64,000 bases of DNA from Adineta vaga. Its lineage: Eukaryota; Animalia; Rotifera. The notes beneath the pieces are model-generated. The model saw nothing but the letters and a program-made list of their open reading frames with translations. It made no database searches and had not been told where the DNA came from. The position numbers and the translations under genes are program-made. The DNA lies in contig CP075495.1 of assembly GCA_021613535.1 (NCBI GenBank), forward strand, positions 15,934,001 to 15,998,000, in the 5' to 3' direction. Below, in pieces: positions 27,540 to 51,500 of the stretch. Position 1 is the first letter of the stretch; each line of letters begins with the position of its first letter.

Positions 27540-30500
27540 ATGGATACTGTGCTACTGCAAAAAATTCAAAAGGCAAAAATTTTGTTACAGCCACCACAGA
27601 GTACGATTACAGCTATTGGATTGCAACAAGGTATCGCTTCCTATGCTCAAGAGCGTGTATGGTTTGAGGAAAAGTTACAAAATGATTCTTCAACATCATT
27701 AACTTCGAATAATGTTGTATTACCTTTGGTGGTTAAATGTGGTTCAATCTCCATTGAACGCATTCGTTCATCTATTCTTACTATTCTTAATCAACATACG
27801 ATTCTTCGAACAGCTTTTGATTTCAATGAAAAGCGTGGTAAACTTATGCAAAAGGTACAATCTAAAGTGGGAATCAACAGCTATTCTTTTGAAGTAACAA
27901 GAAGAACTATTCTGTCAACAAATGAGATGGTTGAATTGATTAAGAACGAATTCGACAATAATTTCAGCGACTTAGATCTCGGATTCGTACTTCGTTGTCA
28001 TTTGGTCAAGATGGGTCTGAATGACGATTATGAGTTGCTGAAACCCGATGATTTAATCATATTTGTTTTTCACCAAATAGTCTTTGATTATAATTCTGTT
28101 GGTCCGTTTATTACTGCATTTACACAAGCGTATGATGAAGTAACATCCAACATGACAAATTTACAATACATTGATTATACTTTGTATGAACAAACACAAT
28201 TAGCCAGCAGAGATCAAGATTCAAACATAAACAAGGCAAAACAATTTTGGTCAACATTAATGCGTGATTATAAGCCATATGGAAGGAATTCATCATTAAC
28301 AACTTCGATGCATGAAATGAAGAAACGCTCTGGTCGAGGTCTTAGTGCTACATTTAATCTGGACTCATATACCGTAGGAGCACAAATCGAATTCGCATCC
28401 TTATATAATGTATCTATGTTTGATTTGGGGCTCGCGTATTATTTTATTTTTCTGTATGAACTGAACAATGGTACGATCAACGATCTATGCGTAGTTTGTC
28501 CGACAGCTAATCGTCCATTAATTGAAATGAAATCAATCATTGGTACATTTATCAATATGTTACCGTACCGTATTCGTATAGATCCAAATCAATCTTTTAT
28601 AAATTTTGTCCAACGTCTTCATACATTATGTGCTGATATTTCTGAACATGATCAATTGCCATATCAATTGATCATGAAAGACACGGATAATTCATATCTG
28701 CCAAAACTGCCCTTTCATTTCCGATTTGATTCAATTGATCCTTTATCAGCAGAAGAAATGGCCCTCGAATCTGAAACGAAAGATGGAACATTGGGATTAT
28801 ATATAGATGGAGTTTGGTTGCATGGTAATAGTGTCATGGCTAACGATCTTACTTTAACGATGATTCACAATCATCAAGAACAGAAAACACAGTATATTTT
28901 CGAATGTTCCACTGACTGTTATAAAGAAAAAGCAGCGGCCGAAATGTGTCGACATTTTGAGGATTTTCTGTCGAATTTCTTCATCAAAAGTTCGACAACT
29001 TCTGACTTCAACAATACTCAACAATCGATTACAAGCTCATCTCATCTATTATCAGGCATCAAACAGTTGTCAAAAGCTAATTTCGAGCAACAATCAATTA
29101 TTGCAGAAACATGTAAGTCTCTCGTTGTAAACTATTCAAGAGCTCTATATTTTACAAATATTTCAGCATTTTCAACAGGTTCAAACTTGAAAACGGATGA
29201 AAAATGTTCATTAGCTCCTAAGGAAGACATACTAAAAATTGCATCAAATAATAAATTAGAAGATACGATTAATAACATTTGGCATGAAGTAATGCACACA
29301 GAGCTTGATTCATATAAAACACAACAGAATTATGACTCATCAATATCAACTACAACTAGCTTCTTTAGTCTTGGAGGTGATTCTCTTCCATTGCTTCAAC
29401 TCTATCGCTCATATCAATCTATATTTCACTTTGATACTGATGCTCTATCAATTCGAACGTTCTTTGAACATGATACTCTAGCTGAACATGCAAAATTACT
29501 AAAAACAGCCATCATAAATGATATTCAATCAAGACAGTGGCATACACTGCATATTAATCATGGTAGTCGGCTTTATGTTAGATCCTTATAAATCATACAC
29601 CTCTTTGGTATTTTCCTAGGTATTGCATCATTCGCTCAGGAGCGTATCTTTCTTGACGAACAAGTCCGCTTTTCCAATAAAATTGCCATATACAATGAGC
29701 TGGTAGTTGTTCGACCTGTCAAAGGTTCATTATCAATGGCTCTTCTATTAGAAGCTCTACGAGCTGTTTTAGAAAAGAATAATATATTGCGTACGTGCCT
29801 CATTTTAGACAATAGTGAAAATAAATTAAAACAATGTGTAACTGATCATCATCAAACATTCACATTTGCAAACGAACAAACGTTTGAGACCGACAATGAA
29901 CTTAGTGATCTCATTTATAAAGGAAAAGTTGATCGAAGTCGTTTTGATTTATCAAATGGGCGGATTTTTGATTGCCAGATACTTCGGAAACAGCAATCAT
30001 TGAACTCAAACTACGACACTGAACAGATAACAGATTCAGACGTGCTCATATTTGGTTTTCATCATACAGTATGTGATAGATTATCTTTTCAAAATTTTCT
30101 CAAAAGTTTAAGTCGTGCTTATAATAATAAAAAAGCATATGCAGGCGAGAAACAGTCTCTACAATACATTGACTATACTGTTTTGGAACGTGTAATGGAT
30201 ATGACATTATCTCGTGAGTTTTGGCATTCACAACTTGATGGATATAACTTTAAATATCCATTTCCTTTTACCGTCGATCGTCATCGTTTACCAAATGATC
30301 AACGATCAGGTGTAGCGTCCACGGCTCAGATCGCGTTCGACGATGACATTGCCTCGTCTTTTTTAAATTATGCATCAACACATCATCTTACGTTTTTTCA
30401 GCTTGGATTAGCGATATTTTATGTATTTTTATTCAAGTTATCTCATGGTCTAACTGATTTGTGTGTTTCTTGCTTAAACGCTAATCGATACAAAAGTGAA

Positions 30501-33500
30501 CTACAAGATATGATTGGAATGTTTGTTTCAACATTGCCTCATCGTCTGCAACTTGATTCTAGTTGTTCATTTGATGAACTTGTGAAACATGTTCGAGACC
30601 AATGTTTATCGGTTCTAGAACATTCCCACTATCCACTGCAACATATCCTAGCTGATTTTCATCTTAATCGATCGAATGTTTCATTTCTTGAGACACTCTT
30701 CGACTTTATTACTGTATCGCCAAATTTCGATCAGCCTTCCTTCGATGGAATAATCCTAGGAGAGGCACCTTTAAGACAGTCATATGAAGTGGCGAAATTT
30801 GATTTTTCAATGACATTCTTCTACAATTCAACTTCAGATGACCATAAACTATGGTGTTCTCTTGTTTGTTCAAGTGAAATATTTGACGAAGCAACAGTTA
30901 AGATCCTCAGCCGACGATTTAATTATCTTGTTGAACAACTAGTTTCTTCAAATCCAAGTACTAAGAGAATAGATACATGTCTTTTATCTATATCAAATAC
31001 TGACCTTATTTTGCCAGAAGAAGCTAACGAAATACAGAACATCGACTTTTGTCGACAACTAGATGTACTAAATGACGGTAAATATTCACTTATTCATATG
31101 TAAAGCATCTCACAAATTATATTTATGAGAAAGACTATGGTGTATCATTTTATTAGGGAACACAAAAGCATTTTTCTGGTTTTCGATGATGTTTTCCGGC
31201 AGTTACTCGGTAGTTCTGCCAGCGCTTTTTTGTACGTTTCACTAAAGTACATTGAACTGTATTTAGGAACTGCCAAAGAACTCCCGACAAGCATCAAGGA
31301 ATACTAGGAATGCTTTTGCATTCTCTCGCAAAATGACACTCTTATAAAAGCTTGCAGGGACTTACATAAATTCTTACAAAAATTATCCACGGTTGACTCG
31401 AGGGGGAAAGAGCGGAACCGTGATTCCTGAATTCCCATGTATTCCGCTCTTTACCCCTTGGGTTGAGCTGCAAAGCGTTTAATCATTTAAATACAGTATA
31501 ATCTTTCCCTAGTGGTCAAAAATCGGGACTTCCCAAAAGTGCACACTGCAGAGATGCGTTGAATATAAAGAGATAACGGTAAAATTACGTATCTTACCAC
31601 TTTTCCATTTCGAACACCGAATAGTGAGTGCTCGGAACGAACTCCCTGTGGAAAAACAGGATGTTCGGGCAGGGTGGTGCGGAATTCATCAGAGCATTTT
31701 TTAAAAAATCATTTCAAAGACAGAAGCTAATCCACGTTCGCTGACTACGCTTCTCTTTCAACCATAGCTTTCCTTTAGTTTTTCTCAAAGGGGGGAAAAA
31801 TCAAAGAGAAAATAGTTAGACCAATGCTACTAAAATAATCAAGGAGAAAGCTAACATGTAAGAAAAAAATTAGAGTGGGAAAATATCTCTCCCGTAATCA
31901 TAGGACCTACCTCACACTCTTAGACATATATCACATCACCACCTTTTCTGCCATTATACCAATTACTCTATCGATTGCAGTATTCTCCAAAACGTTTTCT
32001 ATCTACCTCGATATCTGCTTTCATTATTAATTCTTCCAATAAATTACTTCCGATCTCTCTTAGACAAACGAAACGCATAATATAAGCAAAGAAAGCATTT
32101 AAGAGAATCTAAGAATATGAACGAAGTCTTCCCGTTCTTCAACAGCTCTTGCCATTATTACAGAACTATGAAAAATCATTATCCTTCACACAATATGAAT
32201 AAACATCACGGCACAATAATCAGCCCTAAACTTACTAGCAAAATAGACAATCCTCATAAATCTTTTCAAAAAATTAATTAAATTATTATTTTGTTCAGCA
32301 CCAGCATCCTATGCTCAAACACGTCTGTGGTTTAAAGAACGCTCCAATCCTGATATCGGCAACTCGCAAGTGCCTAGTTACAACATGCCATTTGTTTATC
32401 GGCTATATCTACAACGTACTCTCTCAAGAGAAAAGCTTTCCATTGCACTCCAACTCATTGTCAAAAAGCATCCATCACTTCATACAGCACTCACCTTCCA
32501 TTCTGAAAAACAACAACTCATGCAACAGATCATCAACCATGACGATAATCAAAACAACAAAATGCACTTCCCATTTATCATCAGCACTTATGAAACCGAT
32601 CAACAACTTCAACAGATCGTCTTCGATGAAAACAAAAATTCTCAACTATTTGATTTATCACAAGGTCATGGTTTCCGATGTCATCTTGTTTATCATCAAG
32701 AGACCTCATCTGATGATGGTCTCTTGTCTGACAAAGATCTCATCATCTTCAATTTTCACCATGCTTTCTTTGACTTGCAATCATTGGATATCTTCTTAGA
32801 TGATCTTAACCAAGCATATGTCGCAGGTCAACTATGTACACATGGAGAAAACGATGAAACTGTCCTACGTTATCTTGATTGTAAATATCATTCTCCTATT
32901 CTTCTATTTGTCTTTATCATTATTCTTTCTACACAGATGCTCTCATTGAACAACAGATGTCAATGAGCGGCGCAAGTTTCTTTTGGCTTGATACACTTCA
33001 TGATTGTCAACTCGATCGAACCCTTGCTTTACCTTACGATCGATATCGTCTTTCCAATCAACAGCGAACTGATCGTGCAATATCTCTTACTTTCGATTCT
33101 GATCAACATCTTTCACATCGACTTCTTACTTATGCATCAACAAATAACATTTCATTTGAGCATCTTATTCTTTCACTCTATTTTCTGTTTCTCTACAAAA
33201 TCACCAGTGGTCAAAAGGATCTCTGCATTGCTATCGATACACATGGTCGATATCGACCTGAATTCAACTCAATCATTGGCGTTTTTGTCAATACGATTCC
33301 TCTTCGATGTCAACTTCATGCTCATTGGTCATTCATTCAATTCGTTGATCATGTGTGTGAAATAACAAGAAATTCAATGAAATATTCATACTATCCACTT
33401 CAGCACATTCTCAATCAACATCCTCATCTCTCACATGCTGCATTTCTTCATACATCATTTGAATTCATCGTTTCACCAACTACAGGCAAACACAGAAATA

Positions 33501-36500
33501 CAATTATTATTGGTGACAATCAACTTTCGTTGTTGCCTTTGTCAGTTCATACAAATGAAAATGAAATTATCAGTAAATTTGACTTCTTCGGTAGCTTCAT
33601 ACATAATCCAATGACAAATCAACTTTCATGTACAATGAATGCATCACTTGACTTGTTCACTTGTGAAACAATTCAAACAATGACACAACGATTTCACCTC
33701 ATGTTGCATCATTTATTTTCATCAAATGATACTGGTCGATCTGACACATCCATCTGCGAATTGTCATTCACAATGCCTCATGAACAACTTCTTCTTCAAT
33801 CATTAAACAATACACAAACTATATCTTCTCCTGTTACCACTGAGCATTGTATTCATCAGACATTTGTCAAACAAGTGATAAAACATCCACAAAAACTAGC
33901 AGTTGAATTAGATGAACAATCATTGACATATGCTGAGCTGTTACATTCTGCTCAGATCTTATCCTTATACCTGCTGAATCGGTGCTCAGTTCTTGTAGGT
34001 GATATTGTTTGTCAATGTGTTGAACGAAGTATTACAATGGTAAGCATGTTGAATAAATACATATGTCCGAAATGAAACTATTTTATTCATTTTAGGTAAT
34101 TGGTATCATGGCAATTGAAATGACAGGTAGTGCTTATTGTCCTTTGTCACCTCGAGATCCTCATCATCGTTTGCAATCACTTGCAAAACAAACACACAGT
34201 CGACTTGTTCTTGTTCATTGGTTGACAAACGAGAAGTTTAACGATGATGTTATTTCATTAGATATCGAAATGACACTAATAAGCAATTCTTATATCGAAA
34301 ATCATATGAATTTTGATTCATTGTCCAATATAACAGTAACATCAGAGAATATAGCTTATGTTATTTTTACAAGTGGATCGACAGGAACACCAAAAGCGGT
34401 TCGTTGTCGTTTGCTCTCTCAAAATCTGAATGTCTTGTATATTATTTATAGGTTCAAGTTTCTCAAGGGAATTTCATTCATTATGCTGAATCCTTGACTC
34501 AGATCAATTCATTCAATAGTGATGATGTTGTTATACAAATGGCTCGATGCTCATTTGATATGCATATGCACGAGATAATAGGCATTCTCATCCTTGGGGG
34601 AACTTTAGTAATGCTTCATCCACATGGAACACTCGATTTCGATTACTTGAAGGAAATGTTAGAGAAAAAACAAATCTCATACATGCATTCGGTGCCAAGT
34701 TTACTGTTCAGTTTCTTTACGTACGTTGAACAATCACACAACAAAAATATCTCATTACACCTTCGTTCACTAATTAGCGGTGGTAAGTAGTCATGACAAC
34801 ATATTATTGATGATAGCTCATCACACTATCATTTGTCATAGGTGAACCATTTCCGATTCAGTTTGTCGATATCTTGAGACGACTGGTTATCGCATATTGT
34901 ACTATTTGGAATTCGTATGGTCCAGCTGAAGCAACTATTGCTTGCACGGGGCACATTGTCAATCTCATCGAAAAGTACGAGAATGTTCCGATTGGTCCAC
35001 CTCTTCCTCGATATCGATGCTTGATCTTAGATGAATTTGATCAAGCGGTTGTCATTAATGAAGAAGGCGAATTGATTGTTGGTGGTGTTGGCGTCTTTAT
35101 TGGATATCTTCATCGTGATGATTTAACGTCAAAAGCATTAGTTTATGTCGATAATGAGCTATTCTATCGAACGGGTGACCTTGTTCATGTCGATCACCAT
35201 GGTTTTATTCATTATCGAGGAAGAAAGGATCATCAAATCAAAATACATGGTCAACGTATTGAATTGGGTGAAATAGAACAATGTCTTTTATTGATTTCAT
35301 CAATCTCAGCTTGTATCGTCGTGAAATGGACTGATGATAATCTTATTTCATATATTCAAAGTTTATCTGTTAATGAACAAGAACTTCGTGATCATTGTCA
35401 GTCACATCTTCCATCGCACATGATTCCATCATATTTTATCATTCTTGATAAATTGCCATTGAATACAAATGGAAAAATCGATCGGAAGAGTCTTCCTGCG
35501 CCGCATTTCTCCTCGTCATCTGTTGAGGATGAGATTCAATTCAAATCACCCAGCAATGACATAGAAATCATTGTTCACAACACTTGTTGTGATATATTTC
35601 AACGAAAAAGCATTTCAATCAATACAAATCTTTTCACACTTGGTGCTCACTCTCTTCTCATGATACAACTCTTTCATCGATATAAAACAAAATTTCAATT
35701 ACATTCAAATTCATTTTCTATCACTGATCTTTTTCAACATCCAACTATTTATGATCATGCTCAAATTATTCATCAAACTCTCGACATGACACAAACAATG
35801 CATGACTCAACTTGGTTTTCACTCCATCTAACACAAGGTGAGACATGCACATATGACAGAATGTATGAACAATCCGGAATCTTTTCTTTTCTTCTTCTCT
35901 CTTCTTCTAGCAAAAGCGTCCTATGCACAAGAACGTATCTACTTAGATGAACAAATTCGTTTCACAACACAAACAAGCAATCATAATATGTATGTTATTC
36001 CATTATTATATCGTGTTTCATCTCTTAACAATCACATATCATTATCACGATTGCATCATGCATTGCAAAATGTTATTACAAAACATCGTATTCTACAAAC
36101 AGCTCTTTACCTCGACACAAATGGAATTCTTATACAACATTGCTCTAAGACGAAATCATGTTCATTATCGGTCGATGATCTTCTTCAATATGAAAACTGT
36201 ACGACACATGAAGCTGTCATAAATATTATGAATCAGCCGAGTTTATTTGATTTATCCACAGGCAATGTAATTAACTGTCACATTCTCCGTTCTCATCGAT
36301 CATCATCATCATCTCATAATAACAATAACCAAAATGATGAGCATAATGATGATCTGTTGAATACAGATGATCTTATCCTATTCACTATTCATCATGCATT
36401 CTTCGATGGAACATCAACATCAGTCTTTATTCGTGATCTTTCTCTTGCCTATTCGACGAGCAATTCTTCTGATTCTTCTCCATCTATAAATCTTGATCCA

Positions 36501-39500
36501 ACATTTCAATACATTGATTATTCAGTTCATGAACATCTCATCGACATGACAACATCTCAACAATTTTGGTCTTCACAACTCCATGGATTCGATTTTCAAC
36601 ACCATCATCATCCTTCCTTATTGTGTGTCGATCGAGAACGATCATCACCAACAACTGTTCTCAATCAACGATCAGGTTCAGCATCAATTGCTTCATTTTC
36701 ATTTGATCAACGATTATGTACGTCGTTTGTCAACTATGCATCTCAACATCATCTTACACTGTTTCAACTTGCTCTAGCAACATTCTATGTATTTCTCTTT
36801 CGATTATCTCACTGTCAAACCGATCTATGTATCGCTTCAATTAATTCAAATCGGTATCGATCTGAATTACAAAATATGATTGGAATGTTCGTTGCAACAT
36901 TACCTTATCGTCTTCAACTGGATCGACATTGTTCATTTAATGAACTCGTTCGACAAGTTCGAAATCAATGTCTATCAATTCTTCCACATTCTCATTATCC
37001 ACTTCAACATCTTCTTGCTGATTTTCATCTTAATCAATCGAATGTTTCATTTCTTGAAATAATGTTTGATTTCATTAATATTTCATCTAATCGTAGTTCA
37101 TTTCGTTTGGATGAAACGCCTTTAGAACAAATATCCTTAGAACAATCAGATCAGGTGGCTAAATTCGATTTTTCCTTGCACTTCGTGTACGACGCCACAG
37201 CGTCGAATGACGAACAACTATCATGTGTATTTATTTGTTCATCTGATTTATTCGACGAGAGAACAGTTACACAAATCAGTGTACGATTTCAATATCTTTT
37301 CGAACAGTTGTTTGCATCGAACGAAAGGGCGGAAATAGGAAACGTATTTGATGTACCTATATCGTCATTTAATCTCATTTTACCAGAAGAAGCGAGAGAA
37401 ATCGACGATGTTATGTTTAGCCGACAAGATGACGTGATAAATGAAGGTAATGGTTTGTCTTTGTTGTTTTATATGTTGCCGAAAAGGCTATAGACTAGAC
37501 CAAAAGTGTTCATAGTTGATCTGCTCTTTTGTTGGGTTAATCAGAGTGGACATAAGGTGTAAGATTGATAACTCTTTGTGTTGTACTTGTGGCACAACTG
37601 TATCACGGTATCGTGCAGTCTCGAAGCTTGAATGTGAGTCCGAGTTTTTAGCATAGCAACGGGTGTTTGGATGAAAATCCAATGCTGATCGCCTCACAAA
37701 GCAGAGGTGACGTTTTGTTGAGTTGAGTTAATGTCAAATTTGTGTATTCTTTTATTGTGTCAATCAGGGCTGCCATCCGTACCCCATTTGGGGGTACCGT
37801 ACCCCATTTCGACAATTTGTACCCCAGAAATATTTGTACCTCAGAAGTACAATATTTGTACCCCATTTTGGATAATTTCTTTTTGTATAAGATTAAATCA
37901 TATTTTGCTATAATTAATAAATTTATTGGCTATAATCAAGGGGGAACAAACTGATTTCTAGCCAGAAATCATCGAAAATCAGTGGAAATTACAGAAATCA
38001 TTATATCTGATACATTTAGCTCCAAGATTTCAGGTGATTTCTATGATTCCACTTGATTTCTCTTGATTTTCACTGATTGCACCTGGGAGTCGACCTCTTT
38101 TGAAAGCAGTAGAAATCGCTGGAAATCAGTTTGTTCCACCTTGGCTATAATTGAAATTTTCATTTGCATAGAGACATGATGACTCAATTCTATTGACCAA
38201 ATTGATGACAAGGGCATAATAGTGCTATTCTTATTTTCAGCATTTGTACCTCCTTGTCTTTTCCAGTTTTAGTCACGCAATCGAAATGTAATCTTGTTCC
38301 TTATCAGTCACAGTTTTCTATCATAAAAGTGCTAACTGAAACAATTGATAGTGAATTAACGACACGATTTAATAAGTGCTACCATGAAATCAGAAGATTT
38401 TGATTTTTTGCGCAATCTCACTCAGAATTGATCAAATTTGCGAAAATCAAACCAAAACAGTTATGTGAAATACGTGTATTAGCTAATTCAAACGTAGAAC
38501 GTCTACTTTAAGTGGATATTTGTTATTATTTTTTGAACAGATAGATATCACGAGAAGACATGTATATGTAAACCAGTTGTTTTAAAATAAAAGCTAGAAC
38601 CTGAATAGAACTTTCAAAACGAACAAAGTTGTAAATAATCTTATAAGGTAAAAACCAGTGTTCAAAATCGATTTCACATTCACAGCTATTGTTACTCAGA
38701 AAGAACATGTGTACCCCATAAGTGTACCCCATTTAAAGTAGTATTGTACCTCACTTGTACCCCATTTAGAAATTTTTGTACCCCATTTCGAGCCTGAACA
38801 GATGGCAGCCCTGGTGTCAATCCATCTTTTCTTTTGCCTTCCTCTGCGCCGCTTGCCACCGACCATGCCAAGCATTATATCTTTTTGCAAAGAATCTTGT
38901 CATCGAATTATGTGTCCAAATTATGATAATTTTAACTTCAACATTGAAGCTTCCAGTGAACATTCAGGTTTTATTTCTTCTAAAACAGATTTGTTGGTTC
39001 TTTTTTCCGTCCATGGAATACGAAGTAATCTTCTCCAGCACCTAAGTTCAAAGGCGTCGATTTTTCTTTTATCGGCTTGTTTAATTGTCCAACTTTCACA
39101 TCCATACGTTGTTATCGGAAACACCATCGTTTTGATTATTCTAATTTTGGTGGTCAAGTTGATGTTCTTGCTCTTGATGAGCTTGTCCATAGTGACGGTT
39201 GCCTTTCTACCCATCAGAAGTCTGCTTTTTATTTCGTTACTGCGGTTACCATCGATGTTTATACTAGAACCCAAGAAAATGAACTCTTTGATTATTTCCA
39301 CTTGATCATTGTTGATGTAAAATTCTTGAATGCGTCCATTTGTCATCACGAAGGTCTTTTTCATATTCAGTTTTAGTCTAGCAGATGCACTTTCCTCTTT
39401 TACCTTTCGTAGGAGGTATTGGAAATCATCAGCTGTTTCAGCCAATATTGTAGTTTCATCTGCGTAACGTAGATTGTTGATATTTCGTCCACCAATTTTT

Positions 39501-42500
39501 ATACTACCTGTTGCTTCATCTATTCCAGCTTTCCTCATTATATGCTCTGCATATAAATTAAATAAATATGGAGATAGAATGCAGCCTTGTCGTACTCCTT
39601 TTCAAATGTTGAACCAGTTGGTATTTCCATAGTCTGTTTTCACGGGTGCTTGTTGATCGGTATAAAAGTTCTTCATGAGGATGATCAAATGCTTTGGCAC
39701 ACCCATTTCCAATACTACAGACCAGAGTTTCTCGTGGTCTACACAGTCGAAAGCTTTACTATATTCGATGAAACATAAGTAAAACTCTTTTAGGTATTCA
39801 CGAGCTTTTTCCATCAACCATCGTATATTTGCTATTTGGTCGCGTGTTCCTCTTCCTTTTCTAAATCCTGCTTGTGTAATTGGCATTTCTCGTTCGAGAA
39901 AAGGTTTCAATCACCGTTGTATAATCTTCAACATGATCTTGCTGACATGTGATATGAGAGCGATTGTTCGATAATATGAGCAATCTTTGGCATTTCCATT
40001 CTTCGGTATGAGGATGAATATCGAAGTTTTTCAATCTTCAGGCTATTTTTGTGTTTTCCATATTTGTTGACATAACTTTGTAAGTATTTCCACTGCATCT
40101 TCTTTGATTGACTTGAAGCATTCAATTGGGATGCCATCATGTCCAGGCGCTTTTCCATTTGGTTTTGATTTCATCACCATTTGTTAAATTTTTATCATTT
40201 TGATCTATTAAAGTTCCATTTCTGGGTATAAATTGTCCACGGAAGTATTTTATCTTCTTGTATTCTTCTACTTTTTCACATTCTTCACTAATTTGTTTTT
40301 GTTTGTCTATTCTTGCTGCACGCTGAAAGTCGGCGTTAAGTTTTGCGAAGACTTGTCTGTTTCCATTTGCTTTAGCTTCTCGTCTTTCCTTTGCGATTTT
40401 CAAGGTGTTTGACGATAACCAGTTGTTTTTCTTCTTCTTTGGGATTGTCAGTGTATTTCTTGCCATAATTCTTCAGGTTCCTTATCGACGAGGTTGAGTG
40501 CGTTCGATCTGTTTTTCACTTCTACCTTGTACTCGTACGGAATATTTTGTAGATCGGGTTTTCTGTTTCTGTTGATTTGTGATGTTGTTGAAGCTTGATT
40601 CGAAAACTTGCTACCAAAAGTTCGTGATCATCGCCGTAGTAAGTTCCTGGTCGTGTTTTGACGGATGCTGTTGAGCTTTTCCATCGTCTGTTGCAGAGAA
40701 TATAATCAATTTGGTTTCGATGTAGGCCATTTGGTGTTGTCCATGTGTATAATCGTCGTTTTGCTTGTTGAAAACATGTATTGGTGATGATCATATGATT
40801 TTCTTGGCAGAAATCAATCATTCTCTCCCCAGCTTCATTGCGCTTTCCCAGACCAAATTTTCCAACTATGTCAGGTACTGCCATTTTGCCAACCTTTGCA
40901 TTCCAGTCACCAATTATCAAGATAGCATCCTTCTTTGGAACATCGTTGAGTATTTATTGTAAACCTATGTAGAAATCGTCGATTGTCGATTCATCTGCTT
41001 CTGTGGTTGGTGTGTATATCTGTATTATTGTTAAGTTCGTTGGTTTTCCTTCAAGTCGAATAGAAAACATTCAATCACTTCTTGGATAATATTCGATTAC
41101 TGATTTAACAAGATTCTTGTTTAATACCATGGCCACTCCATTTTTTCTAGTGTTTTGGCTGCCAGAATAATAGACTTCATAGCTGCCGGATGTGAAATGA
41201 CCATTACCTGTCCATTTGAGTTCACTTATTCCAAGGGTGTCTATTTTGATTCGATCCATTTCTGATTTGACTATTTCGAGCTAGCCTTGATTCAGGCTTC
41301 TTACATTCCACGTGCCAATTTTGTGTGTTTTCAAAAAGCTTTCTTCTTTCCGCTTGTATCTGTTTTACTCAGCGATTGAACTTCCTTTCAGTTTTGATTC
41401 AATAGCGTCATTATTTACAGTACTATTTGTACTCGACCTTGGCTCTTCCCCAGCCATACTTTTGATGCCTTCCAACCTGAGAGTCCCATCTTCCGGCACC
41501 ATAGCCTGAAACGTCGTCGACTGTCTGTTCATTGAATTTTCTTGGTAGATATACTGAAGTGATTTACCATTCCCTTCTTCAGCGCAGTTCGAGTTACTTC
41601 GTTGCGACCTACTATCGCTGCTGCCCGATAGTTTCTGCGTACGGGCATTTGCCCTAAAAATATCTTTAAGTTTCTCTCTCGTACCACTTAGAGATTGCAC
41701 GTTCCGACTTTATGAGAGAAACGTTTTCTATCTACCTCGATATCTGCTTTCATTATTAATTCTTCCAATAAATTACTTCCGATCTCTCTTAGACAAACGA
41801 AACGCATAATATAAGCAAAGAAAGCATTTAAGAGAATCTAAGAATATGAACGAAGTCTTCCCGTTCTTCAACAGCTCTTGCCATTATTACAGAACTATGA
41901 AAAATCATTATCTTTCACACAATATGAATAAACATCACGGCACAATAATCAGCCCTAAACTTACTAGCAAAATAGACAATCCTCATAAATCTTTTCAAAA
42001 AATTAATTAAATTATTATTTTGTTCAGCACCAGCATCCTATGCTCAAACACGTCTGTGGTTTAAAGAACGCTCCAATCCTGATATCGGCAACTCGCAAGT
42101 GCCTAGTTACAACATGCCATTTGTTTATCGGCTATATCTACAACGTACTCTCTCAAGAGAAAAGCTTTCCATTGCACTCCAACTCATTGTCAAAAAGCAT
42201 CCATCACTTCATACAGCACTCACCTTCCATTCTGAAAAACAACAACTCATGCAACAGATCATCAACCATGACGATAATCAAAACAACAAAATGCACTTCC
42301 CATTTATCATCAGCACTTATGAAACCGATCAACAACTTCAACAGATCGTCTTCGATGAAAACAAAAATTCTCAACTATTTGATTTATCACAAGGTCATGG
42401 TTTCCGATGTCATCTTGTTTATCATCAAGAGACCTCATCTGATGATGGTCTCTTGTCTGACAAAGATCTCATCATCTTCAATTTTCACCATGCTTTCTTT

Positions 42501-45500
42501 GACTTGCAATCATTGGATATCTTCTTAGATGATCTTAACCAAGCATATGTCGCAGGTCAACTATGTACACATGGAGAAAACGATGAAACTGTCCTACGTT
42601 ATCTTGATTGTAAATATCATTCTCCTATTCTTCTATTTGTCTTTATCATTATTCTTTCTACACAGATGCTCTCATTGAACAACAGATGTCAATGAGCGGC
42701 GCAAGTTTCTTTTGGCTTGATACACTTCATGATTGTCAACTCGATCGAACCCTTGCTTTACCTTACGATCGATATCGTCTTTCCAATCAACAGCGAACTG
42801 ATCGTGCAATATCTCTTACTTTCGATTCTGATCAACATCTTTCACATCGACTTCTTACTTATGCATCAACAAATAACATTTCATTTGAGCATCTTATTCT
42901 TTCACTCTATTTTCTGTTTCTCTACAAAATCACCAGTGGTCAAAAGGATCTCTGCATTGCTATCGATACACATGGTCGATATCGACCTGAATTCAACTCA
43001 ATCATTGGCGTTTTTGTCAATACGATTCCTCTTCGATGTCAACTTCATGCTCATTGGTCATTCATTCAATTCGTTGATCATGTGTGTGAAATAACAAGAA
43101 ATTCAATGAAATATTCATACTATCCACTTCAGCACATTCTCAATCAACATCCTCATCTCTCACATGCTGCATTTCTTCATACATCATTTGAATTCATCGT
43201 TTCACCAACTACAGGCAAACACAGAAATACAATTATTATTGGTGACAATCAACTTTCGTTGTTGCCTTTGTCAGTTCATACAAATGAAAATGAAATTATC
43301 AGTAAATTTGACTTCTTCGGTAGCTTCATACATAATCCAATGACAAATCAACTTTCATGTACAATGAATGCATCACTTGACTTGTTCACTTGTGAAACAA
43401 TTCAAACAATGACACAACGATTTCACCTCATGTTGCATCATTTATTTTCATCAAATGATACTGGTCGATCTGACACATCCATCTGCGAATTGTCATTCAC
43501 AATGCCTCATGAACAACTTCTTCTTCAATCATTAAACAATACACAAACTATATCTTCTCCTGTTACCACTGAGCATTGTATTCATCAGACATTTGTCAAA
43601 CAAGTGATAAAACATCCACAAAAACTAGCAGTTGAATTAGATGAACAATCATTGACATATGCTGAGCTGTTACATTCTGCTCAGATCTTATCCTTATACC
43701 TGCTGAATCGGTGCTCAGTTCTTGTAGGTGATATTGTTTGTCAATGTGTTGAACGAAGTATTACAATGGTAAGCATGTTGAATAAATACATATGTCCGAA
43801 ATGAAACTATTTTATTCATTTTAGGTAATTGGTATCATGGCAATTGAAATGACAGGTAGTGCTTATTGTCCTTTGTCACCTCGAGATCCTCATCATCGTT
43901 TGCAATCACTTGCAAAACAAACACACAGTCGACTTGTTCTTGTTCATTGGTTGACAAACGAGAAGTTTAACGATGATGTTATTTCATTAGATATCGAAAT
44001 GACACTAATAAGCAATTCTTATATCGAAAATCATATGAATTTTGATTCATTGTCCAATATAACAGTAACATCAGAGAATATAGCTTATGTTATTTTTACA
44101 AGTGGATCGACAGGAACACCAAAAGCGGTTCGTTGTCGTTTGCTCTCTCAAAATCTGAATGTCTTGTATATTATTTATAGGCTCAAGTTGCTCAAAAGAA
44201 TTTTATTGGCTGTATTCAATCATTGACTGAGATCAATTCATTCAATAGTGATGATATTGCTATACAAATGGCCCGTTGCTCATTTGATATTCATGTCCAA
44301 GAAATACTCGGTTTACTGATCGTTGGAGCAACTTTAGTAATGCTTCATCCACATGGAACACTCGATTTCGATTACTTGAAGGAAATGTTAGAGAAAAAAC
44401 AAATCTCATACATGCATTCGGTGCCAAGTTTGCTTCTTAGCTTCTTTATGTATGTTCAGCGATCAGACAGTATGCAGATCTCTTTTTATATTCGATCATT
44501 ATGTAGCATCGGTGAGTAACGTATTCAAAAATGTTTGCTGATTGGCGTCATATTGTTATACCATCTAGGTGAACCATTTTCGATTAAGTTAATCGACATC
44601 TTGAGGAAACTTGCCGTGCCACAACTGGTAGTATCGAATCTTTATGGTCCAGCAGAAGCAACTATAGCCTGTACAGGATGTGCCCCGAATATTCTAGAAA
44701 TATCTGAAAGTGTCCCTATAGGCCAACCTCTTCCTCGATATCGATGCTTGATCTTAGATGAATTTGATCAAGCGGTTGTCATTAATGAAGAAGGCGAATT
44801 GATTGTTGGTGGTGTTGGCGTCTTTATTGGATATCTTCATCGTGATGATTTAACGTCAAAAGCATTAGTTTATGTCGATAATGAGCTATTCTATCGAACG
44901 GGTGACCTTGTTCATGTCGATCACCATGGTTTTATTCATTATCGAGGAAGAAAGGATCATCAAATCAAAATACATGGTCAACGTATTGAATTGGGTGAAA
45001 TAGAACAATGTCTTTTATTGATTTCATCAATCTCAGCTTGTATCGTCGTGAAATGGACTGATGATAATCTTATTTCATATATTCAAAGTTTATCTGTTAA
45101 TGAACAAGAACTTCGTGATCATTGTCAGTCACATCTTCCATCGCACATGATTCCATCATATTTTATCATTCTTGATAAATTGCCATTGAATACAAATGGA
45201 AAAATCGATCGGAAGAGTCTTCCTGCGCCGCATTTCTCCTCGTCATCTGTTGAGGATGAGATTCAATTCAAATCACCCAGCAATGACATAGAAATCATTG
45301 TTCACAACACTTGTTGTGATATATTTCAACGAAAAAGCATTTCAATCAATACAAATCTTTTCACACTTGGTGCTCACTCTCTTCTCATGATACAACTCTT
45401 TCATCGATATAAAACAAAATTTCAATTACATTCAAATTCATTTTCTATCACTGATCTTTTTCAACATCCAACTATTTATGATCATGCTCAAATTATTCAT

Positions 45501-48500
45501 CAAACTCTCGACATGACACAAACAATGCATGACTCAACTTGGTTTTCACTCCATCTAACACAAGGTGAGACATGCACATATGACAGAATGTATGAACAAT
45601 CCGGAATCTTTTCTTTTCTTCTTCTCTCTTCTTCTAGCAAAAGCGTCCTATGCACAAGAACGTATCTACTTAGATGAACAAATTCGTTTCACAACACAAA
45701 CAAGCAATCATAATATGTATGTTATTCCATTATTATATCGTGTTTCATCTCTTAACAATCACATATCATTATCACGATTGCATCATGCATTGCAAAATGT
45801 TATTACAAAACATCGTATTCTACAAACAGCTCTTTACCTCGACACAAATGGAATTCTTATACAACATTGCTCTAAGACGAAATCATGTTCATTATCGGTC
45901 GATGATCTTCTTCAATATGAAAACTGTACGACACATGAAGCTGTCATAAATATTATGAATCAGCCGAGTTTATTTGATTTATCCACAGGCAATGTAATTA
46001 ACTGTCACATTCTCCGTTCTCATCGATCATCATCATCATCTCATAATAACAATAACCAAAATGATGAGCATAATGATGATCTGTTGAATACAGATGATCT
46101 TATCCTATTCACTATTCATCATGCATTCTTCGATGGAACATCAACATCAGTCTTTATTCGTGATCTTTCTCTTGCCTATTCGACGAGCAATTCTTCTGAT
46201 TCTTCTCCATCTATAAATCTTGATCCAACATTTCAATACATTGATTATTCAGTTCATGAACATCTCATCGACATGACAACATCTCAACAATTTTGGTCTT
46301 CACAACTCCATGGATTCGATTTTCAACACCATCATCATCCTTCCTTATTGTGTGTCGATCGAGAACGATCATCACCAACAACTGTTCTCAATCAACGATC
46401 AGGTTCAGCATCAATTGCTTCATTTTCATTTGATCAACGATTATGTACGTCGTTTGTCAACTATGCATCTCAACATCATCTTACACTGTTTCAACTTGCT
46501 CTAGCAACATTCTATGTATTTCTCTTTCGATTATCTCACTGTCAAACCGATCTATGTATCGCTTCAATTAATTCAAATCGGTATCGATCTGAATTACAAA
46601 ATATGATTGGAATGTTCGTTGCAACATTACCTTATCGTCTTCAACTGGATCGACATTGTTCATTTAATGAACTCGTTCGACAAGTTCGAAATCAATGTCT
46701 ATCAATTCTTCCACATTCTCATTATCCACTTCAACATCTTCTTGCTGATTTTCATCTTAATCAATCGAATGTTTCATTTCTTGAAATAATGTTTGATTTC
46801 ATTAATATTTCATCTAATCGTAGTTCATTTCGTTTGGATGAAACGCCTTTAGAACAAATATCCTTAGAACAATCAGATCAGGTGGCTAAATTCGATTTTT
46901 CCTTGCACTTCGTGTACGACGCCACAGCGTCGAATGACGAACAACTATCATGTGTATTTATTTGTTCATCTGATTTATTCGACGAGAGAACAGTTACACA
47001 AATCAGTGTACGATTTCAATATCTTTTCGAACAGTTGTTTGCATCGAACGAAAGGGCGGAAATAGGAAACGTATTTGATGTACCTATATCGTCATTTAAT
47101 CTCATTTTACCAGAAGAAGCGAGAGAAATCGACGATGTTATGTTTAGCCGACAAGATGACGTGATAAATGAAGGTAATGGTTTGTCTTTGTTGTTTTATA
47201 TGTTGCCGAAAAGGCTATAGACTAGACCAAAAGTGTTCATAGTTGATCTGCTTTTTGAGGGTGTGGATGGGTTTGGGTGTAGGGTTGATGTAATACTGAC
47301 ACCTACACCCATTCAAAATCACCCACACTCACACCGCCCAGGTAAACCCTACTTTCTTGTTCTCTCTTAAAAAAACGTCAATAATTGGGAAATGATCGCA
47401 AAAGTTATTTCACAAGAAATGTTCTGAATTTTATTTCAGCATTCTGTCTCGTTGTTATAGCACCAGCATCGTATACACAAGCACGTATTTGGCTCGAGGA
47501 CACGAAATCAGAAGCTGCAGCTTATCACATGCCGTTTGTGTATCGTTTTGTTTCATCTAATACTATATCAACGAAACAACTTCAAAATGCTCTTCAACTG
47601 TGTGTGGGTAAACACCAATCACTTCATACATCACTGAACTTTGATACAGAAAAAAATCAACTCATGCAACGAGTTATAGATTCGCACGAGACCTACAATG
47701 GATTATTTAGATTCGTCGAAAGTACTTATGAAACAGAGGAACAACTCTATAATATTATACACGAAGAAAAACATAATTCACAACTTTTTCATCTTGCTCG
47801 TGGACTCGTCTTTCGATGTCATGTAGTTTATTACAAACAAATTTCTTTCGATGCACATCTTTCTGACAAAGATGTCCTTATTTTTAACTTTCATCATGCT
47901 GTTTTTGATCTTCCATCAATGAATCTATTTCTTCATGATCTTAATCAAGCTTATACAACAGATCAACTATTAACAAATGATAATGATAATAATACTCTAC
48001 GCTATCTTGATTGTAACTATAAATATTTCTAATAATTTCTTTTCATGAGACATAATCTCTCTCGCTGTTATTTAGATGCTCTCATTGAACGACAAATGTC
48101 AATGCATGGTGCTAGTAGGTTTTGGCTTGATACTCTTCATGATTGTAACATTAATCAACCTTTATCATTACCGTATGATCGACACCGTCTCACAGATGAA
48201 CATCGAACTAATAATGGAACTTCGGTTTCTTTTCATGTTAATCAAGATCTATCGTATAATTTTCTCTCATACGCATTGTTGAATAATACCACACCTGAAC
48301 AACTAGCACTTGCTATGTACTATGCCTTTTTATTTAAAATAACTAATGGAGAAAAAGATCTATCTATTGGGATAAGTACCGATGGTCGATATAGGAATGA
48401 ACTGAAATCAATTATTGGAGTATTTGGTAATATTATTCCTTTACGATGTGAATTCCATCATTATTGGTCTTGTCATCAACTGATCGAACATGTCAAAGAG

Positions 48501-51500
48501 ATGTCAACAACTAGTATGAAATATTCTTATTTTCCTCTTCAGCATATTTTCGATCAGCATTTGGATACTTCAAAGCTTGCAGCTCTTAGTACATCATTCG
48601 AATACATATCATCCACGTTGAACATTGTCAAAAATGAAACAAACATCGATAATAGTCGACTCTGTTTGATGCCCTTCACTATGAAGACGCATGATAATGA
48701 AATGATGAGCAAGTTTGATTTCATTCTCAAAATTGAACATGATTGCAATATCAATCAACTGTCATGTACAATCAATGCATCACTTGATATATTCAAAGTG
48801 GAAACAGTTCATATGATTCAACAACGATGGTATTCAATGTTGGAACAATTATTTACATCTGTTCATGATCCAAAAATGAACAAATCCATTTATGAATTAT
48901 CGTTACAACTGCCAGATGAACAATTCCTGACACAATCTATGAACAATACACAAACATCAATTTCTTTTATGAGTTGTATTCATCAAAAATTTTCATATCA
49001 AGTAATGAAACATCCGCAAAAATTAGCTGTTGAACTCGATAATCAATCGCTGACATATACTGAATTATTACATTATGCTCAAATATTATCTTTAAATCTC
49101 CTAAAGAAACACTTTGTAAAGGCAGGTGATATAATTTGTCAATGTGTTGACAGGAGTTTATCAATGGTAAACTTGTTGAAATCAATTTTTCGTTCTCATT
49201 TAAATATTCACGCTATTTAGGTTATTGGCATGATGGCCATTGAAATGACTGGTGGTGTCTATTGTCCACTGTCACCTCGAGATCCACGACATCGTTTACA
49301 TGCACTTGTACAACAGACTCAAGCTCGTGTTGTCCTCGTCAATTTTCTGACCAGAACTAAATTTCATAATGAGATCGTACAAGTGGATTTCGATACGAAT
49401 TTGATTGATTATTACGAGAAAACTAATACGGATTTTGAGCGATTATCGAATGTTAGCGTGACTTCGGATAATATTGCCTATGTCATCTTTACAAGCGGTT
49501 CAACTGGCACACCCAAAGCGGTAATTTTATTCTTATTTTTTATATGACTTTAAAATATATTTCTTTGTAAAGGTTCAAATTCGGCATCGTAATTTTGTGG
49601 GATGTATTCAATCTCTACTTCATATTGGCTTATATACATCTAGTGATATTGTAATGCAAATGGCAAGCTGTTCTTACGATGTTCACGTGCAAGAAATTCT
49701 AGGAACATTGATAATTGGTTCGAATCTTGTATTTCTTCACCCTGAAGGAAACATGGATGTGGAATATGTTGTAACAGTTTTGAAGGAAAAACAGATAACA
49801 TACATGCAAAGTGTTCCAGCATATCTCAGTTATATGTGTGATTTTCTCGTAAAAAATGATCATCCAAAATTGGAAACATTACGCACTCTTGATATCGGCG
49901 GTAAGATATTTGCATAAATAGTCAGAAATTCTCTATTAATGTTTTCTAGGCGACAAAAGTACAGTTCAACTATTTGAAAAACTATACAAACACATATTAC
50001 AAAATGCTAGAATAGTGCATTTGTATGGACCGGCAGAAACAACCATTGACTGTACATATCACTTCGTTGATATGCAACTCGACAAAACAAGTGCGCCAAT
50101 TGGCCGCTCACTGCCCAGTTATAAGTGTATGATTCTGGACGAGTTCTTACAACAAGTTCTTGTTCATCAAGATGGTGAATTATATGTTGGAGGTGTTGGT
50201 GTCTTTGCTGGCTATTTGGGACATAACGAGCTGACAGGAAAGGCACTGTTAGTTATCAATGGCGAGATATTTTACCGAACAGGTGATCTAGTTATGTTGG
50301 ATAAAAATAATCTTCTTCATCATAGAGGCAGAAAAGATTATCAAGTCAAATTACACGGACAGCGGATTGAATTAGGAGAAATCGAAAAATGCTTACTAAG
50401 TGCACCTATTTCTGCTTGTATTGTTACGAAATGGAATGATAGCCAGCTAGTTGCTTATATTCAAAGCTCTACTATTGATGATAAACAAATACGTGAACAT
50501 TGCCAAACTTATTTACCGTCCCATATGATTCCATCCAAATTTATTATCCTTGAACAATTACCATTAAACGCCAATGGAAAAGTAGACCGCAAACAACTAC
50601 CATCGCCCAAAAACCTCATTCAGTTCGATAACTACACTAGTGATGCAGAACCACTAACACCATTGGAAGAGCGTCTATGTCGTATCTTTAGCGAAGCATT
50701 TCACAGTGATTCACCTGACGTAAATATGTCCTTTGGACATATGGGTGGCACATCATTAGATGCTATAAGAGCACTCTGGCTGATACGAAAAGAAATTTGT
50801 AATAAAATCGATGCCAGTACATTATTTTTAAATCCATCTGTTCGACAACTCGCAAAAGCCATCGAACCACTGCTAATTATACTTGACGAATCATCTGTGA
50901 CTCCTATGACTCAAGAAACTGTCGACGAGAAGGAAAGGCCTATGCCATCTTTATGTATTGAGTTAATAGGCATTCTATTAATTATAGCTCATGGGTTAAG
51001 CCCCCTATGGTCATTGTATTATTTTAACTTTCCCATCGCTCTTATTTTTATACCCGTCTTTCATCTTTTATCATACGTTGTTTGCCAGCGTTTAATGTTT
51101 CTTCAACAGGAGACTGTGAAACGAAACAAAAAATTATATTCATGGCAATATTATCGTTGGTGGTTTTTAAATAGTTTATGGTTGACAAATAATTCTTATT
51201 GGTTGCAACATTTAATAGGCACACCTTTTTACAATTTTTATTTACGATTATGTGGCGCCAAAATTGGATGTCATGCACATATCTACACAACATTGATTGA
51301 TGCACCTTGGTTAATTGAAGTCGGTGAATCGACATTTATCGGCGAAGAAGTGGTGTTTTCAAATTTATCTTATCAAGATCAAACTTATGAACTTCATCCA
51401 ATTTATATTGGATCGCATTGTTCTGTCAACACACGTAGTATACTATATGACAAGGTGATTATCGAAGACCATGTCTATGTGGAACCTATGTCTGCCATTA

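Follow-up and report, generated by a model that had tools for sequence, protein, structure and literature searches.

How can two modules of one peptide synthetase be identical base for base over some five kilobases, introns included, and yet differ deeply in the short stretch that forms the substrate pocket? The question is raised by a 64,000-nucleotide stretch of the genome of the bdelloid rotifer Adineta vaga (assembly GCA_021613535.1, contig CP075495.1, positions 15,934,001 to 15,998,000 of the forward strand), which at its full length is called the window below. The window carries one multi-module, intron-bearing nonribosomal peptide synthetase (NRPS) gene that begins near 27540, and two of its modules, here termed cassettes 1 and 2, show this mosaic, to which an earlier account made from the letters alone (the sequence-only reading) had drawn attention. 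The explanation favored here, at a probability of roughly 0.6, is recurrent gene conversion between the modules with the pocket-bearing subdomain protected by selection, conversion and selection being deduced as the cause from the evidence given below.

Two modules that differ in a single subdomain

The cassettes lie in twin segments that could be divided as follows, dS being the synonymous divergence and code positions being those of the adenylation (A) domain specificity code.

31990-37525, plus strand: duplicated segment, copy 1, delimited by alignment; 309 bp of upstream intron, the whole module cassette and 79 bp of downstream intron
41719-47252, plus strand: duplicated segment, copy 2, delimited by fixed-offset comparison, blastn and global alignment
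34453-34600 (partner 44182-44329), plus strand: patch-left, 79% identical, dS about 0.5; motif A4 and code positions 235, 236 and 239
34601-34702 (partner 44330-44431), plus strand: identical core within the patch, 102 bp, 0 mismatches; code position 278, His in both copies
34703-34998 (partner 44432-44725), plus strand: patch-right; code positions 299, 301, 322, 330 and 331, with a diverged intron inside

Direct counts gave a single mismatch in the 2,463 bp of the left flank (31990-34452 versus 41719-44181), an intronic C/T at 32184/41913, and none in the 2,527 bp of the right flank (34999-37525 versus 44726-47252). The sequence-only reading had described a base-for-base match through exons and most introns with this one single-nucleotide polymorphism (SNP), and all its coordinates were correct. 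Between the flanks, global alignment showed 28 substitutions and 4 gap positions in patch-left, and 79 substitutions and 30 gap positions in patch-right, the exon parts of which are about 63–64% identical; the intron inside it (34783-34841 versus 44512-44568; 59 bp in copy 1) is only about 56–61% alignable. Alignment and counts also bore out the proposed edges of divergence, from just after the acceptor at 34452/44181 to 34999/44726, and the identical patch of about 100 bp within, which measures 102 bp. An even spread of divergence had been named beforehand as contrary to the idea; instead, there are 141 differences in 444 bp of the patch versus 1 in 5,092 bp elsewhere in the twin segments, which cannot be chance. 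The homogenized 5,092 bp take in four internal introns and 388 bp of outer intron. Outside 31990 and 37525 sequence likeness ends abruptly, and the surroundings of one copy are unrelated to those of the other.

From its second base on, the exon after motif A3 (acceptor at 34451/34452) belongs to the patch, which ends just ahead of the residues leading into A6. All 53 amino acid differences between the cassettes fall within residues 663-825, and motifs A1-A3 and A6-A10, the carrier (T) domain and both condensation (C) domains are identical. The breakpoints are thus inside the A core, and the C-A linker and the interface between the A-sub domain and the T domain are untouched. Nine of the ten specificity-code positions lie in the patch span, as expected from the earlier assignment of the divergence to the specificity subdomain of an intron-bearing animal NRPS, and five of them differ (236, 239, 299, 301 and 322); Lys517 falls in the identical right flank. 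The motif register yielded the codes DMHHIGSIAK for the first A domain (A1) and DIQHCILIAK for the second (A2), the same as those read by eye. This register takes the GrsA numbering, with FD in A4 and NxYGP in A5 as the anchors of the count; a search of PDB sequences with the patch exon did not have the PheA structure among its matches, so that the register rests on motif alignment and that numbering. From these codes the two pockets are predicted to take different substrates, two different amino acids at successive positions.

Integrity of the cassettes

Introns were deduced from frame changes and GT-AG sites. Database searches were made exon by exon, and spliced models were used for translation, for substitution rates, for local tblastn searches against paralogous loci and for trees. 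Both cassettes are intact.

32299-32880, 32937-34039, 34096-34398, 34452-34782, 34842-35837, 35911-37446, plus strand: exons of cassette 1, 1,616 residues, with domain order C-A-T-C', where C' is the second condensation-family domain in each cassette
42028-42609, 42666-43768, 43825-44127, 44181-44511, 44569-45564, 45638-47173, plus strand: exons of cassette 2, 1,616 residues

Each has six exons, no stops, GT-AG introns and phase-1 introns on both outer sides. Successive open stretches of the plus strand matched the Pfam families for condensation, AMP-binding, AMP-binding_C and PP-binding domains. The condensation domain (PF00668) was recognized on the exons, with the HHxxxD active site present as HHAFFD in both C and C' of the 1,616-residue cassette. 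The adenylation domain (PF00501 and PF13193) has core motifs A3, A4 (FD), A5 (NxYGPxE) and the A10 lysine, with Asp235 and Lys517 in both copies, and the carrier domain (PF00550) shows the GAHS motif with the phosphopantetheine serine. By domains and motifs the cassettes are thus predicted to function as NRPS elongation modules (C-A-T).

Evidence for two copies from independent DNA and RNA

The surroundings of the cassettes matter for what follows and are listed here.

31078-32298, plus strand: intron A, phase 1, ahead of cassette 1; the repeat takes in only the final 309 bp
37447-42027, plus strand: intron B, between the cassettes, 4.58 kb, phase 1; 79 bp in common with intron C, a unique spacer, and 309 bp in common with intron A
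37526-41718, minus strand: unique spacer, 4,193 bp, a mosaic of decayed dispersed repeats
47174-47460, plus strand: intron C, separating cassette 2 from the third module; identical to the start of intron B over its first 79 bp
47256-47333, no strand assigned: telomere-repeat-like inverted repeat in intron C, beginning 4 bp past the right edge of copy 2
47461-52711, plus strand: third, diverged module, about 50% amino acid identity to cassettes 1 and 2, code DVQQDGLIDK, followed by a Pls/PosA-like terminal domain

Flank identity of this kind could be an assembly artefact, two haplotypes of one cassette having been put in tandem or the identity having been made by polishing. The subtelomeric regions of the A. 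vaga genome are hard to assemble and have divergent haplotypes (PMC8494291; PMC11258130), and a haplotype or polishing artefact had been named in the sequence-only reading as what would overturn it. Logan contigs were therefore placed on 31900-37650, from two DNA runs of different studies and two runs that proved to be RNA. Placement at 80% likeness drew in many contigs of paralogues; binned depths and most listings of other letters and of joints were uninformative, and only per-contig rows, one table of joints and zero-depth bins were used. Both DNA runs have contigs that start at 31990, break at the patch edges (in one run at 34423-34630 and 34673-35028), resume at about 34999-35021 and stop at 37525. 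Branching at these places is expected when the flanks occur in two contexts, and in these two independent studies the flank contigs of 1.9–2.5 kb carry zero differences. The k-mer depths in the two runs were 54 and 136 for the flank, 28–30 and 80 for patch-1 contigs, and 15–17 and 35–37 for long contigs of paralogous genes. A flank-to-patch ratio of 2:1, taken alone, would fit alleles too; the series paralogue, patch, flank of about 1:2:4, in which the paralogue contigs are haplotype-specific, is suggestive, on few contigs, of two copies per haplotype.

In the RNA runs, introns A and B, including the ends of intron B, have no depth, and splicing was confirmed at 32298/9, about 34040-34095, 35838-35910 and 37446. 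In one RNA contig the exon end at 34398 is followed directly by 36 letters matching the start of patch 2 exactly, and another spans patch 1 from 34468 to 34702 without difference: both pockets are transcribed. A further RNA contig crosses the donor at 37446 and stops after 10 more nt. Cassette 2 and module 3 have first exons that agree in precisely their initial 10 nt, so this end is the point where the two possible downstream exons diverge, and both continuations seem to be present in RNA. A false duplication would consist of allelic copies with similar flanks and show a single context in independent reads; here the outer sequences are unrelated on both sides, a 4.2-kb unique transposon mosaic separates the copies, and the same architecture occurs in two other genes. 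The contig branch points, the RNA, the unrelated outer flanks and the transposon-filled spacer make an artefact of haplotype or polishing very improbable.

At position 32184, the only contig placed there in each of the two independent DNA runs has T, the copy-2 letter, and an A>C change was seen at 32272 in one DNA run. The single difference between the copies at 32184 may be a strain or haplotype variant and not a fixed difference.

Discordant ages along the module

Nonsynonymous (dN) and synonymous divergence between cassettes 1 and 2 (C2m1 and C2m2 when set beside modules of paralogous NRPS genes on contigs 6 and 3, here C6 and C3) were estimated by the Nei-Gojobori method on the codon alignment. 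Both flanks and the 102-bp core have dS 0; patch-left has dS of about 0.5 with dN/dS of about 0.4; and patch-right has dS of about 2.0, with a proportion of differing synonymous sites (pS) of 0.70 and dN/dS of about 0.16. Along the module, dS thus runs 0, 0.5, 0, 2.0, 0, and the left and right parts of the patch differ significantly in silent change (Fisher p = 0.003). The coalescence of the patch is much deeper than that of the rest of the module, and its two halves differ in age. With patch-left, core and patch-right each of a different age, at least three segment ages are present, which fits repeated tracts better than one swap.

For comparison, the flanks of the present gene and of the C6 gene differ with dS 0.76–0.9 and pS 0.48–0.52, less than the silent divergence of patch-right; even the 102-bp core is only 76–84% identical to C6 paralogues (dS 0.7–1.2). 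The average difference between homoeologous chromosomes of A. vaga is about 13%, and the partner of chromosome 2 is 5, not 6 (PMC8494291). Trees of pocket and flank segments across paralogues, which the sequence-only reading had proposed, gave the following: flanks, compared within the A. vaga genome, group by gene, with C2m1 and C2m2 identical and a C2-C6 path of 0.39, and in the patch tree C2m1 and C2m2 are sisters (support 91/84) at a path of 0.50, with paths of 0.60–0.65 to the C6 modules. In depth, the split between the patches is about 0.8 of that which separates the C2 and C6 genes, and neither patch nests with a foreign module lineage.

These data bear on the simplest account, a recent duplication followed by fast point-mutational divergence of the pocket under positive selection, without recombination. 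The differences are indeed confined to the specificity region, and five of the nine in-patch pocket positions differ. However, silent sites of the patch are near saturation with dN/dS of 0.16–0.4, its 59-bp intron is scrambled, and a single change is seen at silent and intronic sites over about 5 kb of flank. Old silent sites and a scrambled intron next to flanks with dS 0 imply recombination rather than recent mutation or positive selection, as the sequence-only reading had held, and this account, refuted by silent-site and intron divergence as far as sequence analysis can refute it, has practically no remaining probability.

Search for a donor and for orthologues

A paralogue that had donated the subdomain had been suggested; the genome gave no such sequence. 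DNA searches of the whole 100.8-Mb assembly returned no match above 80% identity to either patch, the best matches being each other (77%) and contig 6 modules (73–80%). Two C3 patches searched against the assembly likewise had nothing above 80% outside positions of the same gene family. No donor closer to a patch than the module's own sister was thus found in the assembly (best non-self match 77–80%, with the patches sisters in the tree).

Two protein database searches with single-exon queries returned no orthologue above 65% identity from other species; matches of 44–65% identity came from Adineta steineri, Rotaria and many metagenome fragments. In soil and other metagenomes (JGI, ENA), hundreds of exon-sized open reading frames (ORFs) are 50–65% identical to the exons and of equal ORF length, and carry bacterial-style names such as 'aryl carrier-like protein'. 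By their sequence they are probably fragments of bdelloid NRPS genes.

Recurrence in two paralogous genes

Islands of divergence in otherwise near-identical modules were found in two further genes. The contig 6 gene (13.70–13.76 Mb) has four cassettes with left flanks 97–100% identical, mosaic right flanks that are 75–100% alike, and three patch types differing by 12–37%, patch-right always being the most diverged part. The contig 3 gene (19.87–19.94 Mb; contig 3 19868001-19938000, minus strand) has at least eight modules. Seven of them agree to 99.3–100% in the left flank, and six to 100% in the right. The patch of its module b is 55–65%, and that of module f 73–84%, identical to the other modules. 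That this gene has seven different patches was considered and found wrong, five of the seven being 96–100% alike.

In nine module pairs of the three genes, island starts range from 34388 to 34732 and island ends from 34940 to 35095, in coordinates of the present gene. The edges are nested and variable, and all nine islands cover 34732-34940, the codons for positions 299-331. Upstream of codon 176, the codons that vary among the five C3 modules with near-identical patches all fall between codons 51 and 144, with the differences clustered at codons 93-144. Pocket positions 301 (Ser/Ile) and 331 (Asp/Ala) are among the variable codons, and two codes result, DIQHCILIAK in modules d, e and h and DIQHCSLIDK in modules a and g. 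The differences among the five modules follow mosaic haplotype patterns, which suggest recombination among modules.

The code of C2m2 equals that of C3 modules d, e and h at nine of nine in-patch pocket positions, with other patch residues 61% matching and the DNA of the C2m2 patch (44181-44725) only 68–75% alike. A code shared despite the 61% match elsewhere in the patch suggests selection on the code. Judged by pocket residues, the substrate loaded by cassette 2 is probably also that of C3 modules d, e and h, in another gene.

Some otherwise identical modules have a further, weaker island in the N-terminal part of the condensation domain: in the first ~400 nt of the C domain, C3 modules a and b are 84–88% identical to the rest, and C6 modules m1 and m2 show such an island as well (c6rc 18062-18716).

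Two possible histories: conversion with a protected pocket, or a recent copy with a swapped subdomain

In the favored conversion history, the two modules would be old duplicates. Non-allelic gene conversion, repeated and very recent, would have homogenized exons, internal introns and adjacent intron ends, and selection would remove the conversion tracts that overwrite pocket-lining residues, leaving an island of divergence. The enzyme would then load two different amino acids at successive positions on an otherwise interchangeable chassis. This history is preferred because there is no donor, the patches are sisters, several patch ages coexist, the edges are nested across three genes, and the codes of the pockets have been conserved or finely adjusted in modules that are otherwise identical. 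As in concerted evolution, homogenization extends to silent sites and introns, and the mosaic tracts have variable ends and discordant ages; gene conversion is documented in A. vaga (PMC8494291).

Several points weigh against it. The edges of identity at 31990 and 37525 are sharp and uneroded and stand inside otherwise unrelated intron sequence, a picture that suits the breakpoints of a recently copied segment better than tract ends left by prolonged conversion. Nearly the same patch is found in five of the seven C3 modules that were aligned, so that whole-cassette amplification is also active in the family. The assembly is haploid and the region subtelomeric, and a hemizygous or unassembled donor is possible. 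The depth argument for two copies per haplotype comes from only a few contigs, different substrates for A1 and A2 are predicted from pocket residues, and the searches recovered no orthologue from another species with which to see whether flanks group by species and patches by position, as concerted evolution would have it.

The same edges, together with one SNP in 5 kb, speak for a whole cassette duplicated very recently, with breakpoints at 31990 and 37525, and for import of the A-core subdomain from another paralogue at the same time or later, the donor being lost or unassembled. This would be a genuine swap of the subdomain, brought about for instance by template switching in break repair. 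Cassette amplification is clear in the C3 gene, the telomere-like hairpin at the right edge of copy 2 and the transposon mosaic between the copies suggest break-and-join events, and A-core swaps of such extent are the rule in bacteria (PMC8097286; PMC9205934). However, the assembly holds no donor above 80% identity. The dS of 0.5, 0 and 2.0 in three parts of the patch means that a single import would be insufficient; the two patches are nearest relatives of each other, neither nesting with a foreign module lineage; and the recurrence of islands in other genes would call for several lost donors. We therefore hold this history to be rather unlikely. Conversion and cassette copying with a swap may well act together. 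Duplication by unequal crossing-over between flanking repeats was also considered and rejected: the ends of the spacer match neither the sequence left of copy 1 nor that right of copy 2.

The sequence-only reading had left the choice between a swapped subdomain and conversion that spares the specificity determinants. Its second option is the one retained with preference, and the first would require a donor since lost. Its description of the locus as a snapshot of product diversification was its weak part: the pocket difference is ancient (dS 0.5–2), and the recent event is the homogenization of the scaffold.

Other features of the gene and window

The gene is ordered as a C-T-C' unit without A core, cassette 1, the 4.58-kb intron B, cassette 2 and the third, diverged module. 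The domains of the first unit (27540-31077) are condensation, carrier and C'; of an A domain it has just a short stretch similar only to the C-terminal end, and it resembles a module whose adenylation core was lost or had never been present. At the other end, 51100-52708 matches the terminal domain TIGR02353 of Pls/PosA-type NRPSs (E 2.7e-32, under the curated cut-off), and also a hexapeptide-repeat transferase motif, in place of a thioesterase.

The spacer contains reverse-transcriptase and AP-endonuclease remnants (RVT_1, Exo_endo_phos) of a non-long-terminal-repeat (non-LTR) retroelement on the minus strand, with minus-strand ORFs at 38924-39538, 39605-39910 and 40525-40920; dispersed copies of its repeats, 66–92% identical, lie on five contigs. 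In the telomere-like inverted repeat of intron C, a G-rich arm is followed by a C-rich arm, the arms being 10–20 nt long and 70–100% complementary. Elsewhere in the window, near-identical (98–99%) inverted-repeat pairs of 165–300 bp occur at 55734-56034/57950-58248, 5553-5848/9158-9454 and 25776-25940/26738-26902.

Significance

The locus is a remarkably clean natural experiment, with two transcribed modules of 1,616 residues that are 53 residues apart, all of them in one pocket-bearing subdomain. Whether this minimal unit determines the specificity of a eukaryotic NRPS could be learned directly from assays of both adenylation domains, and reciprocal patch swaps would show which boundaries are tolerated. 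For the bdelloid NRPS repertoire after horizontal acquisition, the results point to concerted evolution in which specificity islands are protected, as seen in three genes that lie on three chromosomes, and module trees built from whole A or C domains in bdelloid genomes would reflect homogenization, not history.

More tentatively, and with somewhat less than even confidence, bdelloid NRPS scaffolds may be interchangeable chassis, kept identical by break-repair-driven conversion and amplification around a protected specificity island of about 70–165 codons. Were this so, product diversity would evolve by sorting and fine-tuning of pocket inserts, down to positions 301 and 331, and the naturally tolerated island edges would amount to design rules for subdomain swaps in a eukaryotic synthetase.

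Comparison with known systems

Assembly-line synthases with repeated modules are one point of reference. Ketosynthase homogenization occurs among the repeated modules of polyketide synthases (PKSs), and Medema et al. reportedly described, in 2014, concerted evolution and gene conversion among assembly-line synthase modules. The A. vaga case is alike in that modules within a gene are far more similar than modules of paralogous genes, silent sites are homogenized and tracts are mosaic. It differs in that introns are homogenized too and that a sharp pocket island survives, down to single pocket codons in C3.

In bacteria, recombination of the A-core subdomain of NRPSs, which the sequence-only reading had taken as established, is indeed so: it keeps the C-A linker and the A-sub/T interface and has varied breakpoints (Baunach et al. 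2021, PMC8097286; Booth et al. 2022, PMC9205934). Cases include wollamide/desotamide (Booth et al. 2022, PMC9205934) and, as cited in that paper, hormaomycin (Crusemann et al. 2013), and homogenization by gene conversion is acknowledged as a confounder in this literature (PMC9205934). The likeness extends to mosaic modules, A-core breakpoints that vary by case, an exchanged part that bears the binding pocket, and retention of the C-A linker, the A-sub domain and the A-sub/T interface. By contrast, the A. vaga gene is eukaryotic, animal and intron-bearing, no donor could be identified in the assembly, the diverged unit is short (post-A3 to pre-A6, about 165 residues) and itself mosaic, and the recent event was apparently homogenization of the scaffold, not import of a pocket. 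A phenomenon known in bacteria is thus seen at single-base resolution, and family-wide, in an intron-bearing animal NRPS, for which it is apparently undescribed at such resolution.

NRP and PKS genes of bdelloids are known to have been acquired horizontally; they lie in subtelomeric regions, are duplicated and resist easy assembly (Nowell et al. 2024, PMC11258130; Nonribosomal Peptide Synthetases in Animals, 2023, PMC10531068). Those genes, like the present one, are multi-modular, with telomeric repeats and transposons nearby and low but real expression. PMC11258130 and PMC10531068 catalogue clusters, domain orders and expression; the passages searched do not resolve module-level mosaics, pocket islands or conversion.

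Finally, A-subdomain swaps have been engineered (Kries, Niquille and Hilvert 2015; Crusemann et al. 2013; both as cited in PMC8097286 and PMC9205934). The A. vaga patch approximates the small pocket-bearing subdomain that engineers exchange, in a case that is natural and known from its sequence.

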